From sequence record PQ451753.1: a stretch of 64,000 bases of DNA. One strand, written 5' to 3'. Made by a program: the position numbers and the translations under genes. Every line of letters begins with the position of its first letter. Within the stretch, counting starts at the first letter, position 1. The notes under the pieces are model-generated. The model worked only from the letters and a program-made list of their open reading frames with translations, was not told the DNA's origin and made no database searches. This document shows positions 3,526 to 62,694 of this stretch, piece after piece.

Positions 3526-3544
3526 GATATATATCATCTAAGTG
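3526..3544 (+). promoter_or_regulatory. Putative early (virion RNAP) promoter, copy 1
   Basis: GATATATATCATCTAAGTG matches a 19-nt motif repeated upstream of six operons. Confidence 0.65.
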
Positions 3545-5168: not shown

Positions 5169-5193
5169 ACAATCATTAATTGGGAGATAAGAA

Positions 5194-5573: not shown

Positions 5574-5867
5574 ATGTTACGCACATGGGATTTAGGTGGC
5601 AAGCGGGCTGGATGGAAGCGTCACGAGTACAAACACTTATCTAGCCTATCAATTTCAATTCGTTTCGATTATGATAATCTTGAAGACAGTTCGGTACGTA
5701 CATCTCATACCGACGACGGTTACGAGTCGTTCAAAATTGACTACGCGGAAATACAATGGATTGAAAAACAAATTGATGCAGCGTTAGAAATGAAAGCACG
5801 TACTATTAGATTAACAATAACTGTTAGTGATGGTCGTGTAGAGAAACGTTGTAATATTAGAGCTTAA
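5574..5867 (+). CDS. Hypothetical protein
   Basis: 97-aa ORF filling the gap in the operon. Confidence 0.65.
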   Translation: MLRTWDLGGKRAGWKRHEYKHLSSLSISIRFDYDNLEDSSVRTSHTDDGYESFKIDYAEIQWIEKQIDAALEMKARTIRLTITVSDGRVEKRCNIRA

Positions 5868-5879
5868 TTGGGAGTTAAC

Positions 5880-11182: not shown

Positions 11183-11189
11183 ACGAAAT

Positions 11190-12290
11190 CCTCCCTAGGG
11201 TTTATGCATACTATTCGATATTTCCCCCTTTAAGGTCCCCTCTTTCCTTTCCTTTTCTCTTTCCTTTTTCCCCTCTTTGGAAACACCCCTTTTACCTATC
11301 TCTTATCCTATCCTAACTCCCCCCTAAATCCCCCTTTTAGCGTCACTCCAGTCGCTTCGCTCCCAAGGAGTTCCTTGAATGCTGACATTAGATTAATGTC
11401 TCTATATTTTTTTACTGTACAAAAAGTGAACAGTTTTAAATTGAGTATAAAGTTTAAGAAAAATTTTAAGGTTTAATTAATCTAAATATAAAAGTATGTT
11501 TAATAGAAATAGAACTATTGATCCAAGAGATTGACTTGTTTCTCCGAGAGATTGTATGGGCGTGCGCCGCCCGACTCGTATAAGGAGATAAGTGATGATA
11601 CTGAAGTTTATAGCGATAGATGAAATCAATGCATTAAGGATGGCTAAGCAGCTGTTGCAGCGCGGCAGGAAAGTTGCTGTCTATAAGAGAATGGTGGTGT
11701 CTGAAATACAAGACAGTGAGAACGCATTCTTGCAATGCAAATACCGTGCGTATACGGAAACGATAACACCATGGGATTGGCGTTACTTTGAATCGAACAA
11801 TTTAATTTTTTGATCTAAATTAAGTGTTTTTCTAAGGTTAATGTTTTTTTCTACGGTTATACTCCTATTATATGTCTTACACAGCTTTTAGCTAGTGTGA
11901 GATCTAGAGGACAGGGCGAAGCCCTGCGTCGAAGGAAGACGGACGGAGACCGACCGGGGGCGGGAGACGACCGGAGGTAGAGATTCGAGGGAGCCCGGAG
12001 AGGCTCCCAGAGAAGTAGATAGATAAAGATAGATAAAAGAGAATAGAATAGGGAGAGAATCCAGGATGGATGGAAAGAAATGTGGAGCTTTAAAAAGTTT
12101 AGGATAAACTAGACTTTAAATAATCCTTTTTTTATTTGTTAAGGTTAAGTTATGAAATTAAATCTAATTTTAAAAAGTTTATTGATCGGCATTCCCGGAT
12201 TGAGTCCTTTGCCGCCCGCGCCACTGGTTACTTTTTATACAGAGGTGCATAGTGTACATAACTCGTAAATTTTTCTTTAAAGGCTTTTAG
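11190..12290. other. Candidate replication-origin / control region
   Basis: Mostly non-coding 1.1 kb: polypyrimidine tract left, polypurine tract right, AT-rich core, opposed GCGAAGC motifs, short direct repeats. Confidence 0.45.
11592..11813 (+). CDS. Small hypothetical protein
   Basis: AAGGAGAT RBS, 73 aa. Confidence 0.5.
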   Translation: MMILKFIAIDEINALRMAKQLLQRGRKVAVYKRMVVSEIQDSENAFLQCKYRAYTETITPWDWRYFESNNLIF

Positions 12291-13838: not shown

Positions 13839-13906
13839 TGTGTAGGAATCGGGCTTGCACGCGGTTTCTGGGAATGATTTTAAATGGGGTTGCGCATTTG
13901 CAGTCC

Positions 13907-13953
13907 GGTAGGGTTGATAGGTTCTTGCTTATCCTCCCTACCAACCTTTTTTT
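13907..13953 (+). terminator. Terminator/attenuator-like hairpin upstream of the nuclease gene
   Basis: GGTAGGG/CCCTACC stem, alternative GGTTG/CAACC pairing, T7 tract. Confidence 0.55.
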
Positions 13954-13972
13954 ATTTGTCTGAGGAAATATC

Positions 13973-15644: not shown

Positions 15645-15663
15645 AATATATTTTATCTTAGTG
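15645..15663 (+). promoter_or_regulatory. Putative early promoter, copy 3
   Basis: AATATATTTTATCTTAGTG. Confidence 0.6.
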
Positions 15664-19990: not shown

Positions 19991-20413
19991 GTGATGGCTG
20001 ACATTAACACGCTTAAATCGGGACAGGTTGTCTCGTTTAAGTTACATACCAAACTGATCTCCGACATCTTTACCAACGTAAAGGTGCTCGGTGCAGTGGG
20101 GTTCGATTTAGCAAACAATATTGAGGATGTTGCCGCAATTCATGCCAACATCTACTCAACACTTCCAGAGGGTACGCCTGAAAGTCCAGAAGACTATGAT
20201 TACCTAATCGTAGAAACTATTGACGGTCAGCGTAAAGCTGTAGGTGGGCCATGGATTAAAGATCCTATCACGGTAGTTGACTCTGCAACCATCCGTGTTA
20301 CTTTGAACAACGCAACCACTTCAGATGTTGAGAAGGTTCGTAATGCATTAAATGCTTACGGATTCATCGACCTATCAATTGAAGTATTGAGTGGTTCTAG
20401 TATACAATCCTAG
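19991..20413 (+). CDS. Conserved chimallivirus protein (phiKZ gp49-like)
   Basis: DVAAIHANIYSTLP..P..P.DY.YL block; directly upstream of the polymerase gene. Confidence 0.6.
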   Translation: MMADINTLKSGQVVSFKLHTKLISDIFTNVKVLGAVGFDLANNIEDVAAIHANIYSTLPEGTPESPEDYDYLIVETIDGQRKAVGGPWIKDPITVVDSATIRVTLNNATTSDVEKVRNALNAYGFIDLSIEVLSGSSIQS

Positions 20414-20414
20414 T

Positions 20415-20590
20415 AATAAATTAAATGGTTGGCTATATTGTGAACGAATCAATCTCCCAATTAGTTTGTTCATTAGTGAGTCACATTTCAGTCCCTGCAA
20501 ATGTGATTTGCTTGCCCACTACTTTTTTCTTGGATTATTTAGTCCACCTTATGAAGCCAGCACCCGTTTGGGTGTTGGTATTTTTTTTTG
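20415..20590 (+). ncRNA. Candidate 3'UTR-derived sRNA with C-rich (UCCC) loops
   Basis: Three hairpins plus terminator; loop 1 is complementary to the phage RBS consensus. Confidence 0.4.
20557..20589 (+). terminator. Intrinsic terminator
   Basis: CCAGCACCC-GTTT-GGGTGTTGG plus T9. Confidence 0.85.
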
Positions 20591-20662
20591 TCTTAATGTA
20601 AAAAGTAATGCAGTCGCTTTTGATTTGTAGAACTAACTAAAACAAAATTCCCAGAGGCAAAA

Positions 20663-22834
20663 ATGTCATTATTCTTACGTCCGGACGAAGAATACGTTCG
20701 TGAAATAAATGTCATGGAAGGCTACATGAAACAGTTGGCTGAATACCTGCATATCCAAACAGGTAAGCCGATGGAAGTAGTTAAGACATGGTTAAAGAAA
20801 GAATTCGAAACTGAAGAGGGTCGATTTAAGTTTAAATCCCCTATTGCAGATATTAACGTACGTGATCCAGAAACAGGTGACCGTAAAGCAGCACGTATCT
20901 CAGTCGCTAAGCTACTGGCTATGACTGACAAAAACGATATCATTACTTCACCATCATTGACCTTTTATACACCTGCTAAGAAGAAGCGTTCACTACTATC
21001 AGTCTTCATCGATGAGAACATCGCAAAACGTGCAAAAGTAAAGAAAGAGATGTTCGTAGCTCAGGCAGAGGGTGATGAAGTAAAGGCTCAGAACAAAAAG
21101 AATGAACAGAACTCATTCAAGACTTTGAATAACGCAACATCTGGCGCACACTCGTCACCATACACGCTACTATTCAATAAGTCTACTCACTCATCGCTAA
21201 CATCAACTTGTCGTTCAGCTACCTCTTATGGTAACGCAAACAACGAGAAGTTACTGGCAGGTTCGCGTCACTACTGGATGCCGGGTATTGTAATCAACAA
21301 TATCTTGTCGACTATTACGTTGACAGACTTCGAAGCATTCCAAGGTTGTATGGATGAGTACAACTTACATTACCCAACAGCAGCTGAGACAATGGAGTGT
21401 ATTGAATACTCAACTCACCTGTTCTGGAATAATGTTACAGCGATGGAGCACATTGAAGACTTCGTTAATAAGCTAACACCAATTCAACGCGCTGCGTTTG
21501 TCTACATTGGTGACCTTTACCATCTACGTAAGCACAACCCTGATGTTGTTCGTGGTTGGATTGGTTCAATGATTGAAGAGACAAATGAAAAGGTCGCTGT
21601 AGAAGAGATTGAAACTGTAGAGAAAGTTACTGATGGTGACTTGACTGCATTAGTAGCGCTACTTCGTGCAGACCTAGTTGGTCCACGTAACCTACGTAAG
21701 GTAAAAGAGCAAGACTTTGAAGATTACCGTATTCTAATGTCTACGTGTATGAAAGTTCGTGAGGCTTGTGAGAAATACTCAACGTTGATTCGTGAGATTA
21801 TGACTACGAAGAACGTACCTGCTTCTATTGCTAGATTGCCTGACACAATCCGTCGTGTATCTTTAGTATCGGATACTGACTCGACTATGGCTACAGCTCA
21901 GCGTTGGTCTGAGTGGTTCTGTGGTGAGATGACGGGTAAGGTTGCGGACAATGTTGCGGATACGATGATCTACATTGCAACGCAGAACATCGCGCACATG
22001 ATGGCGAGAATGTCTACACAGATGGGTGTGGAGAAACAGTACTTGCATCGCTACTCAATGAAGAACGAGTTTAAGTTCAGTGCATTTGCATTGACAAATA
22101 AAGCGAAACACTACTTCTCCCTCATCACTTCGCAAGAGGGTACTCTATTTGAAGATCCTGAGTTAGAAGTAAAAGGTGTAGCATTACGTACATCAAACAT
22201 TCCACCAATCATCATGAATGAATTCCGTGCAACGATTCGTGAGTTGTCGCGTTTGGTTATGGTAGGGGAAGATATTGAGATTGTTCCACTGCTAGAACGT
22301 GTGGGTGACATTGAACACAGCATCGTACGTTCGGTACACAATGGTGACTACCAGTACTTGAAGACTGGTCAGGTGAAAGATAAAACAGCCTACTCTAAAC
22401 CAGAGCAGTCTAACTTCATCTACTGGGAATGGTGGGAAACAACGTTCGGTCCTAAATACGGTTCGGCGGGTTCACCGTCATATAGCGTAGTTAAGATTTC
22501 TGTTGACCTTGGAAACAAGACATTGATTAAACGATGGATTGATAACATGAAAGACAGAGAATTGGCGGGACGTATTCAGGAATGGCACCTAAGAAACCCG
22601 AAACGTAAATTCACGCAGTTGCTACTACCAGAAACAGTTGTAGCGACCAATGGTATTCCAAAAGAGATTTTGGATATTGCGGATTACCGTCGAATCATCT
22701 TTGCATCAGTTGAGCCATACTACCATGTGTTAGAATGTTTCAAAGTGATGATGATTGACAAGAACCGTACGCGAATGGTTTCGGACTTCTATGGTGAACC
22801 AATTGAGAGTGAACTAACGGAGACTGCCACATAG
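20663..22834 (+). CDS. polB: Family-B DNA polymerase, polymerase-domain subunit (phiKZ gp50-like)
   Basis: Motif B QNSFKTLNNATSG and motif C SDTDS; no exonuclease domain. Confidence 0.9.
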   Translation: MSLFLRPDEEYVREINVMEGYMKQLAEYLHIQTGKPMEVVKTWLKKEFETEEGRFKFKSPIADINVRDPETGDRKAARISVAKLLAMTDKNDIITSPSLTFYTPAKKKRSLLSVFIDENIAKRAKVKKEMFVAQAEGDEVKAQNKKNEQNSFKTLNNATSGAHSSPYTLLFNKSTHSSLTSTCRSATSYGNANNEKLLAGSRHYWMPGIVINNILSTITLTDFEAFQGCMDEYNLHYPTAAETMECIEYSTHLFWNNVTAMEHIEDFVNKLTPIQRAAFVYIGDLYHLRKHNPDVVRGWIGSMIEETNEKVAVEEIETVEKVTDGDLTALVALLRADLVGPRNLRKVKEQDFEDYRILMSTCMKVREACEKYSTLIREIMTTKNVPASIARLPDTIRRVSLVSDTDSTMATAQRWSEWFCGEMTGKVADNVADTMIYIATQNIAHMMARMSTQMGVEKQYLHRYSMKNEFKFSAFALTNKAKHYFSLITSQEGTLFEDPELEVKGVALRTSNIPPIIMNEFRATIRELSRLVMVGEDIEIVPLLERVGDIEHSIVRSVHNGDYQYLKTGQVKDKTAYSKPEQSNFIYWEWWETTFGPKYGSAGSPSYSVVKISVDLGNKTLIKRWIDNMKDRELAGRIQEWHLRNPKRKFTQLLLPETVVATNGIPKEILDIADYRRIIFASVEPYYHVLECFKVMMIDKNRTRMVSDFYGEPIESELTETAT

Positions 22835-25909: not shown

Positions 25910-25944
25910 AGTGTGTAATCGTCAGACTAATTGGGAGATAAACT

Positions 25945-27477
25945 ATGACGCTTGGACAACCACGTCCCGATTGGGAATCGAATGGCATCAGTCTTGACAT
26001 CTATTCGCTAGAGAAAGATTTTGATGAACTAAAAATCGAACCAATCATCATTAATGACGTAGCTGATGAGTTCAGCGTCGGTCGTACTATTGATGTAATC
26101 AATGATCTGATTCGTGTTAGTTACGACAGTGATGAACTAAATACGGTGCCTTCCTGTGAAAAGGGATGTACTACAGGTGCATTTAACTACGACCCGGTAA
26201 ACCCAGTCATCTGTGATGTCTGTGGTACGCCAGTCAAGTCGGTAATCAATCAACCACTCCTGCCACAGGTGTGGATGAGAGTGCCAAAGAAAGTGGATGC
26301 GTTCATGCATCCTCGTATCTATCAACTGTTCTCTGAGTACTTCAGAAACAACTACTTTGATTTAATCGAGTATTTAACCAACCCAACATATGTAGTTCCT
26401 CGTCACAACAACTACCGTGGTGGTAAACCAGAGATTGAAAGATTACTGGATTTCCTAGCGGATAACAAAGTTGAGCGTGGCATTAACTACTTCCATCGTA
26501 ACTTTGACGAGTTGATGGATTTGTTGTTAATCCAGAACCCAAGACTGTTCACCTATAAGTACAATACGGCTGATCGTGCAACACGTACATGCGCTAAGTT
26601 CAAATACTTCTTAGACATCTACCGTGATTGTATCTTTACCCGTTATCTACCTTTCCCGTCGAAACTGATTATGGTTTCAGAACGTGGTGGTACGGCAGAG
26701 TTCATTGACCCGAACATGAAAGATGCATTCGATGCTCCAAAGACAATTGCGTCGTTGGAAACTCGTGCAACTAAGCCAAGCTACAAAGTAGTACAGGCAG
26801 AAACTGTAAAGGTCATTAAACTGATGGGTGCCTACTTCAATGGGTACTACAGTAAGACGTGTTCTGGTAAGACAGGTATGTTCCGTGGACAACATGGTGG
26901 TTCTCGTGGCTTCTTTACTGGGCGTGCTGTAATTGCACCTCTAGCAATGGAACATGAGTACGATGAAATCCACACACCTTGGTCATGGTCAGTGACTATC
27001 TTCTCCGTACACCTTGAGAACAAGCTGTTACGTCTAGGATATAATCCGCGTCAAATCATGCGGAAGATTGATAAGGCTACAGTTCGTTACGACAAGATGA
27101 TTCATGAGCTACTCAATGAAATCATCGCTGAATGTCCTGAAGGTGGCTATCCAGTATCGATGCTACGTAACCCAACGTTACGTCGTGGTTCGAACCAGTA
27201 CTTCCGTATTACGAAGATACTAACGAACGTTCATGATAATGCTATCATGATGTCGGTACTTGCTATCAAAGACCCTAACGCAGACTTTGATGGTGACCAA
27301 TTGCAAGTTAAGCTGTTGGTAGATAATAAAGAGAAGCGTCAGTTTGCGAGATTGGCTTCGCATCTGAACATTATGGATACCGACCATCCGAACCGTGTGG
27401 GTGGACATATCACATTCCACCCTGAAGTAACAACCATGGCAAACAACTACTTGTCACATTACAGAAAGGCAGCATAA
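25945..27477 (+). CDS. Non-virion RNAP beta' N-terminal subunit (phiKZ gp55-like), uninterrupted
   Basis: Catalytic NADFDGD motif, LRNPTL, Zn finger CEKGC/CDVC. Confidence 0.92.
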   Translation: MTLGQPRPDWESNGISLDIYSLEKDFDELKIEPIIINDVADEFSVGRTIDVINDLIRVSYDSDELNTVPSCEKGCTTGAFNYDPVNPVICDVCGTPVKSVINQPLLPQVWMRVPKKVDAFMHPRIYQLFSEYFRNNYFDLIEYLTNPTYVVPRHNNYRGGKPEIERLLDFLADNKVERGINYFHRNFDELMDLLLIQNPRLFTYKYNTADRATRTCAKFKYFLDIYRDCIFTRYLPFPSKLIMVSERGGTAEFIDPNMKDAFDAPKTIASLETRATKPSYKVVQAETVKVIKLMGAYFNGYYSKTCSGKTGMFRGQHGGSRGFFTGRAVIAPLAMEHEYDEIHTPWSWSVTIFSVHLENKLLRLGYNPRQIMRKIDKATVRYDKMIHELLNEIIAECPEGGYPVSMLRNPTLRRGSNQYFRITKILTNVHDNAIMMSVLAIKDPNADFDGDQLQVKLLVDNKEKRQFARLASHLNIMDTDHPNRVGGHITFHPEVTTMANNYLSHYRKAA

Positions 27478-32052: not shown

Positions 32053-32078
32053 AGTTAACATGTTGGGAGATATTAAAC

Positions 32079-62606: not shown

Positions 62607-62694
62607 ACCCGTCGCGACGGGACGTTTAGTAAAATAGTACCTATAATGTGTAGGTATTCGTTTTAACAATTTTGGTTAACCAAACAAAAGGTAT

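Follow-up and report, generated by a model that had tools for sequence, protein, structure and literature searches.

In Vibrio phage pVp-JHP1101, 249 nt separate gp225 from the DNA polymerase gene: does this gap hold a gene of its own, and what would its product act on? The gap lies in a 64-kb stretch of DNA, hereafter the window, which matches the final 64 kb of the 230,423-bp genome of this V. parahaemolyticus phage at 100% identity (PQ451753.1; window position equals record position minus 166,423). Since the genes of pVp-JHP1101 include a nuclear-shell protein and split multisubunit RNA polymerases, it was assigned to the phiKZ-like nucleus-forming jumbo phages; its sole close cultured relative is pVa-21, with 85% identity across the window. 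The gap is bounded by gp225 (19994-20413, with an SH3DP domain, PF20287) and by gp226, the family-B DNA polymerase gene polB (start codon at 20663), and all of the neighbouring genes are on the + strand. An earlier note on this DNA had proposed a small RNA with C-rich loops antisense to the ribosome-binding sites of about ten early genes of the phage. The present analysis showed that the gap contains what looks, by its sequence, like a + strand non-coding RNA gene of three hairpins and an intrinsic terminator with no conserved open reading frame (ORF), whose first hairpin exposes a loop perfectly complementary to the Shine-Dalgarno (SD) region of gp229, a subunit gene of the phage's own RNA polymerase. 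The core idea of an RNA loop antisense to a ribosome-binding site was thus supported by comparative evidence, with a target set that is narrower and centred on that gene.

The predicted small RNA is about 150 nt long and covers 20440..20589 on the + strand, as delimited by the fold z-score, the consensus structure and a covariance model, both ends being predicted. A 179-nt segment of the + strand folded with -54.1 kcal/mol (z = -6.25), compared with z = -2.8 for the - strand. Hairpin 1 (20440..20473, + strand) has an 8-bp stem, including one G.U pair, between 20441-20448 (TGAACGAA) and 20465-20472 (TTTGTTCA), and a 16-nt loop at 20449-20464 (TCAATCTCCCAATTAG), in which three weak A-U pairs of the predicted fold shrink the apical loop to CUCCCA. 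This hairpin and its exposed loop, UCAAUCUCCCAAUUAG, were found in the sequence as the earlier note had described them. Hairpin 2 (20475..20512, + strand) is a long stem with several G.U pairs, in which 20481-20488 pairs perfectly with 20499-20506. The stem had been described correctly, and the GUCCC in its loop only in part, as this motif is mostly paired: both the minimum-energy and the consensus folds close CAG/CUG and leave only a 3-nt apical UCC loop, and the motif is not conserved outside the closest clade.

Downstream, a U-rich single-stranded linker (20513..20530, + strand) contains the invariant CCAC at 20516-20519, as seen from invariant alignment columns, and showed no complementarity to phage start regions in a 7-mer scan. 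The short and variable hairpin 3 (20531..20546, + strand) was predicted in the window and, with another sequence and a 3-nt deletion, in pVa-21, and is absent from the RNAalifold consensus. The 3' part (20548..20589, + strand) comprises the invariant CUUAUGAAG and then the intrinsic terminator, with a 10-pair stem-loop at 20556-20579 and a U-run of nine T at 20581-20589, so that the strong terminator of the earlier note was confirmed. A terminator of its own, intrinsic, with a U-tail, conserved and covarying, is a mark of small RNA genes, and the long U-tail and the U-rich linker are compatible with Hfq-dependent small RNAs of Gram-negative bacteria.

The corresponding intergenic region of relatives was gathered via their polB and gp225 proteins, from pVa-21 and from the uncultured L020/L021, L022, L023, L024/L025, L005 (the same contig as L007 and L018) and L006. 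An insert of about 130 nt was found between the gp225 stop codon and the terminator in pVa-21 and these six uncultured relatives; the terminator alone occupies the locus in relatives with about 50% gp225 identity (L026, L029/30) and in SPN3US-like phages (L008-L016), and L027 carries an unrelated insert there. In a 98.7%-identical strain, no substitution was observed in 20354-20611, compared with 24 over the 1800 nt compared. From the five closest sequences, RNAalifold recovered hairpin 1, hairpin 2 and the terminator, and many G.U pairs of the consensus exist solely in the + strand RNA. A covariance model built on the same five sequences (R1) found exactly one copy per genome, without any paralogue of the element in the 230-kb genome, and also detected the element in L024 (E = 5e-6) and L005 (E = 4e-5).

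In a seven-sequence alignment, 95.6% of the cells were paired and 18 of 39 pairs had changed on both sides, a value that none of 500 shuffles reached and that stayed at 4 or below in slid controls; this alignment was fitted to the covariance model, which favours the structure, and the MAFFT-based five-sequence result agreed in direction. The both-side changes affected four of the seven main-helix pairs of hairpin 1, 8 pairs of hairpin 2 (three compensatory pairs being present among the five close relatives) and 5 pairs of the terminator. In L005 a stem was replaced with its pairing kept, from GAACGAA/UUUGUUC to GGCUUA/UAAGUU. Despite the stem replacement, the loop core AUCUCCCA was identical in 7 of 8 lineages, the conservation in relatives that had earlier been named as a check. 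L006 has AACUCCUA instead, together with a second loop containing CUCUCCU.

Coding potential was evaluated on both strands. A 58-aa ATG ORF at 20425-20601 spans the element, and its counterpart in pVa-21 is 56 aa long, which would speak for a small protein, as the good ribosome-binding site that the loop spells on the minus strand would for the relic of a lost minus-strand gene, the outcome that the earlier note had named as refuting its proposal. However, in the other relatives the ORF amounts to 39, 36, 28, 7 and 0 aa, as the start codon is lost or the frame broken by a 2-nt deletion, it has no SD sequence before the ATG and no PHROG match, and it was rejected as coding on these grounds. Furthermore, the stem substitutions are compensatory rather than synonymous, the G.U pairs and the terminator fit the + strand only, and no minus-strand ORF of at least 30 aa starts after the motif, which speaks against the relic. 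Either origin is considered extremely unlikely.

The seed of the loop, AUCUCCCAAUUAGU (20452..20465, + strand), is antisense to an extended ribosome-binding site. In complementarity searches, ATCTCCCAATTAGT at these positions was the perfect reverse complement of 25926..25939 (+ strand), the SD region of gp229 (start codon 25945) and the main predicted target, and matched 5175-5188 at 13 of 14 positions, 12 of them contiguous. The two complementary stretches of the earlier note, 14 nt at 25926-25939 and 12 nt at 5177-5188, therefore both held. When up to two mismatches to the 14-mer were allowed, three matches were found versus 0.39 expected, and 0 of 100 shuffles reached three. The product of gp229 matched PHIKZ055 of the phiKZ non-virion RNA polymerase (nvRNAP) structure 7OGP with E = 4e-72 and carries Pfam PF00623, and the gene comes after the shell gene as in phiKZ; gp229 is therefore the nvRNAP beta'-N gene, orthologous to phiKZ gp55, as had been stated. 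The predicted duplex of the loop with the gp229 mRNA comprises 17 bp over -22 to -6 with -26.3 kcal/mol, or roughly -10 kcal/mol net after opening costs, by estimate.

The loop and the beta'-N site were then compared in every lineage with both partners readable, five in all. The contiguous complementarity was 14 nt in the window (AUCUCCCAAUUAGU), 15 nt in pVa-21 (UAUCUCCCAAUUAGU), 10 nt in L024 (AUUAUCUCCC) and 10 nt in L005/L018 (UUAUCUCCCA), in each case the best match in the DNA available, and 9 nt in the most divergent lineage, for which the loop was taken from L006 (CUCCUAUGU) and the site from the IMG/VR contig L032 (ACAUAGGAG), with longer A/U-rich matches elsewhere. In L006/L032 both the loop and the site differ from those of the other lineages, and given CUCC/GGAG, the five extra paired bases would arise by chance with a probability of about 1e-3 by our own estimate. 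The gp229 site ACTAATTGGGAGATAAA / ACUAAUUGGGAGAUAAA is invariant in four close relatives and the bases just upstream vary; in L027 and L029, which lack the CUCCC hairpin, the ribosome sites of the beta'-N gene are different ones, GGUGGAG and GGAGG. A conserved seed with conserved complementarity to its target, 9-15 nt long in five lineages and jointly changed in L006/L032, is a further mark of a small RNA. The idea of a structured target site forming a kissing loop was rejected, as the gp229 leaders fold no better than shuffles. Separately, CUAAUUGGGA in the gp229 leader (25927-25936) can pair with UCCCGAUUGG (25965-25974) a few codons into the gene, an internal anti-SD present here and in pVa-21; this fold too is no better than that of shuffles, and it was not seen in other lineages.

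To define the target set, the whole genome was assembled and its genes called, the calls matching 39 of 43 annotated + strand starts in the window's first 40 kb, and 257 start regions (-30 to +15) were scanned. The best match was that of gp229 with 14 nt, followed by gp200, gp045 and gp083 (12 nt each), gp202 and gp086 (10 nt each) and gp236 (9 nt). Four matches of at least 12 nt exist in the 230-kb genome, all of them 15-19 nt before start codons, the shorter ones being scattered A/U-rich pieces; with the flanks shuffled and CUCC kept, four or more 12-nt matches had P = 0.002. In a 7-mer scan of the whole RNA, the hairpin-1 loop formed the peak, with up to 11 start regions versus at most 0.8 in coding-region controls, and a second peak consisting of A/U only lay in the hairpin 3 loop at 20534 (ATTATTT, 11 versus 0.1). 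Secondary predicted targets within the window, all on the + strand, are the ribosome-binding sites of gp200 (start 5194; 5177..5188, 12 nt contiguous), which has no match of at least 8 nt at the corresponding place in pVa-21, of gp202 (start 5880; 5865..5874, 10 nt) and of gp236 (start 32079; 32063..32071, 9 nt), the latter two kept in pVa-21 (L019 8920 and L019 33955). Rough accessibility-corrected net energies were about -10, -12 and -9 kcal/mol for gp229, gp200 and gp083, and favourable for these three only.

The targets share an extended site, UAAU(U)GGGAGAUAA, which is recurrent in the phage and enriched after early-type promoters. The latter consist of a cassette, TTTCAGATATATATCAT-N3-AGTGA, with 21 intergenic copies genome-wide (e.g. 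at 3528, 7821, 15647, 23909, 32036 and 36867 in the window), several of which share a leader ending TTTAATGGGAG(A/C)T before the first gene; gp236 is such a first gene. GGAGAT was found at 8 of the 21 first genes after early-type promoters versus 23 of 237 others. The 7-mer GGGAGAT, with six copies in the window versus 4.2 expected, was not significantly enriched; its five + strand copies all lie 4-7 nt before an annotated start codon. ATCTCCC recurs at only one other intergenic + strand place, in a C/T-rich tract. No pairing of the loop with the start regions of polB, chimallin or the major capsid gene was found. As only four ribosome sites match the loop by at least 12 nt and seven in the 230-kb genome by at least 9 nt, it cannot count as antisense to some ten early genes in general; that earlier claim stood for the gp229 site and not for the general set.

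Directly 5' of hairpin 1 lies a conserved motif, GGCTATATTGTG (20431..20442, + strand), a candidate promoter that reads G(C/T)TATAnT(G/T)TG in all eight lineages carrying the element. A TATGTAG or T(A/G)TGTAG motif was found 27-55 nt before many starts (11 versus 1.5 expected), and sites of this type precede genes annotated as tail fibre (gp090), tail assembly (gp113) and internal head protein (gp261) as well as polB, where a late-type promoter-like TTTGTAG (20624..20630, + strand), 39 nt before the start codon, marks the next transcription unit. The late promoters of the phiKZ nvRNAP consist of TATG with the G as +1 (PMC4666361), which the TATGTAG-type motif recalls. The motif of the element reads TGTGTAG in L024, TTTGTAG in L005, TGTGTAC in L006 and a degenerate TGTGAAC in the window clade, and CTATAATGTG is common to it and to the site before gp261 at 62642. 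A weight matrix from 11 TATGTAG-type sites gave scores of 13.3 for L024, 8.4 for L005, 7.2 for L006 and 3.1-5.5 for the window clade. If the motif works like the late TATG promoter of phiKZ, transcription would start near G20440, and a start at this very G would place the 5' end of the RNA at the base of hairpin 1. The early-promoter class (TATATATCAT..AGTGA) is absent from the element. A sigma-70 promoter was rejected, as TATAnT resembles a -10 box but has no -35 and no TGn. A promoter scan yielded nothing beyond the level of shuffles, its one site (9/12) lying inside gp225, and pattern counts of GGCTATAWT, TATAHTKTG and TKTGTAGAA were not enriched.

In the reading that we favour, and hold equally likely to be right or wrong, this RNA acts in trans and blocks the translation of the polymerase subunit gp229 and of a few other genes. 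The gap would give rise, from its + strand, to a non-coding, structured RNA some 150 nt long, and the apical loop of hairpin 1 would pair, in the cytoplasm, with the SD region of the gp229 mRNA and with mRNAs sharing the extended site UAAUUGGGAGAU, namely those of gp200, gp045 and gp083 and, more weakly, of gp202 and gp236. With the ribosome-binding site covered in this way, translation would be repressed. Should the polymerase itself recognise the conserved upstream motif as a late-type promoter, the result would be a negative feedback on polymerase synthesis, with a small gene set turned down during infection. The structure, the non-coding nature and the conserved complementarity are observed; accumulation of the RNA, its start site, the time of its synthesis and repression through its pairing are inferred.

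Several observations weigh against this reading. The motif of the window scored only 3.1 in the weight matrix, and 1078 genome positions are as good. The element is the 3' end of an operon that begins with the early-type promoter at 15647, and may for that reason also, or instead, be made early as a 3' untranslated region (UTR). The early-to-late timing of the translational switch inferred in the earlier note was not supported. Public runs gave only low-depth unstranded contigs at the element, which neither support nor contradict a discrete RNA: one from an RNA library (X18) leads from gp224/gp225 into the element, where it ends at 20517, and a 155-nt contig of unknown library type extends past the terminator, and both could be DNA or read-through. 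The net energy was near zero for gp236 and most other GGGAGAT genes and is modest for gp229, and the several targets are not mutually independent, as they share an extended ribosome site that itself recurs in the phage. The independent lineages are few, about five; in close lineages non-cognate pairs of loop and site match as well as cognate ones, and in L006, with its many 8-11-nt A/U-rich matches, the 9-nt match is not rare and is special by position only.

Some of these points would also fit a structured 3' UTR and terminator module of the gp216-gp225 operon, which would protect that operon's mRNA from 3' exonucleases and insulate it from polB without a trans role, the loop match being a by-product, e.g. 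of an old inverted duplication of a ribosome-site segment. The element directly follows gp225 on the same strand and ends in the only strong terminator of that operon, the RNA-library contig bridges the two, distant relatives have the terminator alone, and the promoter score in pVp-JHP1101 is weak. However, a stabiliser needs stems and not a given loop, and here the loop is invariant and the stems are replaced; every match of at least 12 nt falls on a ribosome site, in L006/L032 the loop changed jointly with the nvRNAP ribosome site, and a conserved motif with late-promoter features lies exactly at the base of hairpin 1. An outer helix between an upstream UGG and the conserved CCAC, which would favour a 3'-UTR origin, had no RNAalifold support. 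Such a module is fairly unlikely, and a 3'-UTR origin would itself be compatible with a trans-acting role. A protein-binding or decoy RNA, the C-rich loop of which is bound by a protein of phage or host, e.g. a translational repressor, a nuclease or an export factor, would account for the invariant loop and for the invariant single-stranded CCAC and CUUAUGAAG, which have no predicted phage mRNA partner, but it leaves the exact complement of one ribosome site and the joint change in L006/L032 unexplained, and no protein partner can be named; we regard it as very unlikely.

A host-directed role was suggested by a resemblance to the Qrr RNAs. No Rfam family was found in the window at gathering thresholds, while in a permissive search the Qrr model RF00378 aligned end to end (1-108) to 20481-20588 with 32.1 bits, short of the gathering score of 50. 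This was the best sub-threshold match of the window, with an E-value of 2e-4 when computed for the region and of 0.059 for the window as a whole, and hairpin 2 aligned to stem-loop 1 of the model. In reverse, 24 Vibrio loci were fetched with the Qrr seed, and in about 19 of them R1 picked the Qrr gene. The two RNAs have the host genus in common, are similar in length and follow one order, from a stem-loop through a single-stranded linker and another stem-loop to a GCCA...UGG terminator with U-tail, and they show these reciprocal sub-threshold covariance matches; the difference is the extra 5' hairpin of the element, the part with the predicted function. On a Qrr-like scaffold, the RNA might use host Hfq and act on Vibrio mRNAs or compete with Qrr, the match to phage sites being secondary, and its hosts are indeed Vibrio species with Qrr genes. 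Against this, the relatives scored lower, with 26.3 bits for L020 and 23.7 for pVa-21, or did not match the model at all (L022, L023, L024, L005 and L006). Homology by sequence alone was rejected with an nhmmer profile of 89 genomic Qrr genes (E = 1.9). The Qrr seed region CCUAGCCAACUGACGUUGUUAGUGAA (CCUAGCCAACUGACG) is not kept, the aligned stretch GCUUGCCCACU-AC agreeing at 10 of 14 positions at best. No sigma-54 promoter (TGGCAC-N5-TTGC) was found either, GGCTATATTGTG being without the -12 GC and its GG not kept in L024 or L006; real Qrr loci have TTGGCAC..TGC. The likeness may thus reflect a shared layout of hairpin, linker, hairpin and GCCA-type terminator, and it is treated here as a sub-threshold lead, a resemblance in layout with a small chance of real descent in which hairpin 1 is not involved. 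A host-directed RNA of this kind is quite unlikely. The composite, an RNA feedback loop of nucleus-forming Vibrio jumbo phages in which a small RNA transcribed by the non-virion polymerase masks the ribosome-binding site of its own beta'-N subunit mRNA, through a hairpin added to a scaffold captured from host Qrr, is about as doubtful.

Among known systems, the phage antisense RNA c4, which is cut by RNase P, resembles the element in its mode of pairing. In phages P1 and P7 the loops of this small RNA pair in trans with the ribosome-binding site region of the ant mRNA and block its translation, and other genes follow c4 downstream on its strand (PMC12197685). Both are phage-encoded small RNAs with loop pairing in trans at a ribosome-binding site of a phage mRNA, here predicted. 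In contrast, c4 belongs to temperate phages, serves immunity control and is excised from its target's own transcript, while the element lies in a virulent nucleus-forming jumbo phage, 5.3 kb away from its predicted target, which is the phage's own RNA polymerase subunit. Rfam gave no family for the first hairpin at E <=10, C4 included, and no C4 match anywhere.

In RNAIII and RsaE of S. aureus and RoxS of B. subtilis, a C-rich loop motif pairs with the G-rich SD sequence and represses translation, and hairpin 1 likewise shows CUCCCA in its apical loop. However, these are RNAs of Firmicutes, whereas the element has a Gram-negative host and one convincing C-rich loop, the second being largely paired; several unpaired C-rich motifs are usual in that class, and L006 alone has two CUCC loops. 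No such Rfam match was obtained even at E up to 10, nor any match in sequence or structure, so that the earlier comparison with RNAIII and RsaE holds as an analogy of mechanism and not as membership. The complementarity of the element runs 9-15 nt beyond the SD core and would therefore confer gene specificity, unlike that of RNAIII, RsaE and RoxS. The element is a member of neither the c4 nor the Firmicutes C-rich-loop families. The endoribonuclease RegB of phage T4 inactivates a subset of the phage's own mRNAs via GGAG SD sequences as infection proceeds; the analogy is functional only, RegB being a protein that cleaves and the element an RNA predicted to mask, with a small predicted set led by a polymerase subunit.

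Further features were observed around these loci. Between the terminator and polB, 20590-20662 is almost invariant in close relatives (GTCTTAATGTAAAAAGTAATG ... TTTGTAGAAC) and is probably the promoter and leader of polB. A second unit without an ORF, at 13839-13972, has a late-type motif, TGTGTAGGAATC, right after the gp213 stop codon and a terminator before an HNH endonuclease gene. It is kept in pVa-21, L037 and L038, its fold z-score is -2.75, and the CCUCCC that it contains, part of the terminator stem, is not conserved; the unit could be a further small RNA or a leader. The long intergenic regions 11183-11594 and 11814-12290 contain C/T-rich tracts (CCCCTCTTTCCTTTCC...), with a G/A-rich tract across the tiny gp210, and a third C/T-rich tract follows gp127 (record 107550-107690; L035 7550-7690). 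No long inverted repeat was found. If transcribed, the C/T tracts would be runs of anti-SD-like CUCC, an origin or a packaging site being just as plausible. The beta'-N ORF is shorter in L038 (13362-15778; 450 aa) and L029 (12832-14949; 458 aa) than the 510 aa seen otherwise, and is followed by an HNH_3/NUMOD1 homing-endonuclease gene in L038 and by a 740-nt gap in L029, pointing to a polymerase gene interrupted by a mobile insertion or an intron. Near-identical phage DNA was present in public runs X1-X17, from many isolate, aquaculture, estuary, coral-reef and mollusc data sets, and the phage group is therefore widespread in coastal Vibrio habitats.

In nucleus-forming phages, transcription takes place inside the protein shell and translation in the cytoplasm, and this separation makes post-transcriptional control a natural but unexplored layer. 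To our knowledge, regulatory RNAs of virulent phages are hardly known, and we know of no work establishing how the early-made nvRNAP is kept from being synthesised without limit at later stages. For phiKZ, the model nucleus-forming phage, a single small RNA has been predicted, which could not be confirmed (PMC8244752), and no earlier report of an RNA like the present one in jumbo phages was found in the literature. The element provides a concrete, conserved, predicted pair of RNA and target with a natural compensatory variant, testable by reporters or by antisense oligomers, an approach that has been made to work on jumbo phages (PMC12571901). If the favoured reading is true, a lytic jumbo phage would direct a base-pairing RNA at its own core transcription machinery. 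This type of control has not yet been described for nucleus-forming phages, and the sequence comparisons indicate that the element probably switches off the translation of the polymerase gene.

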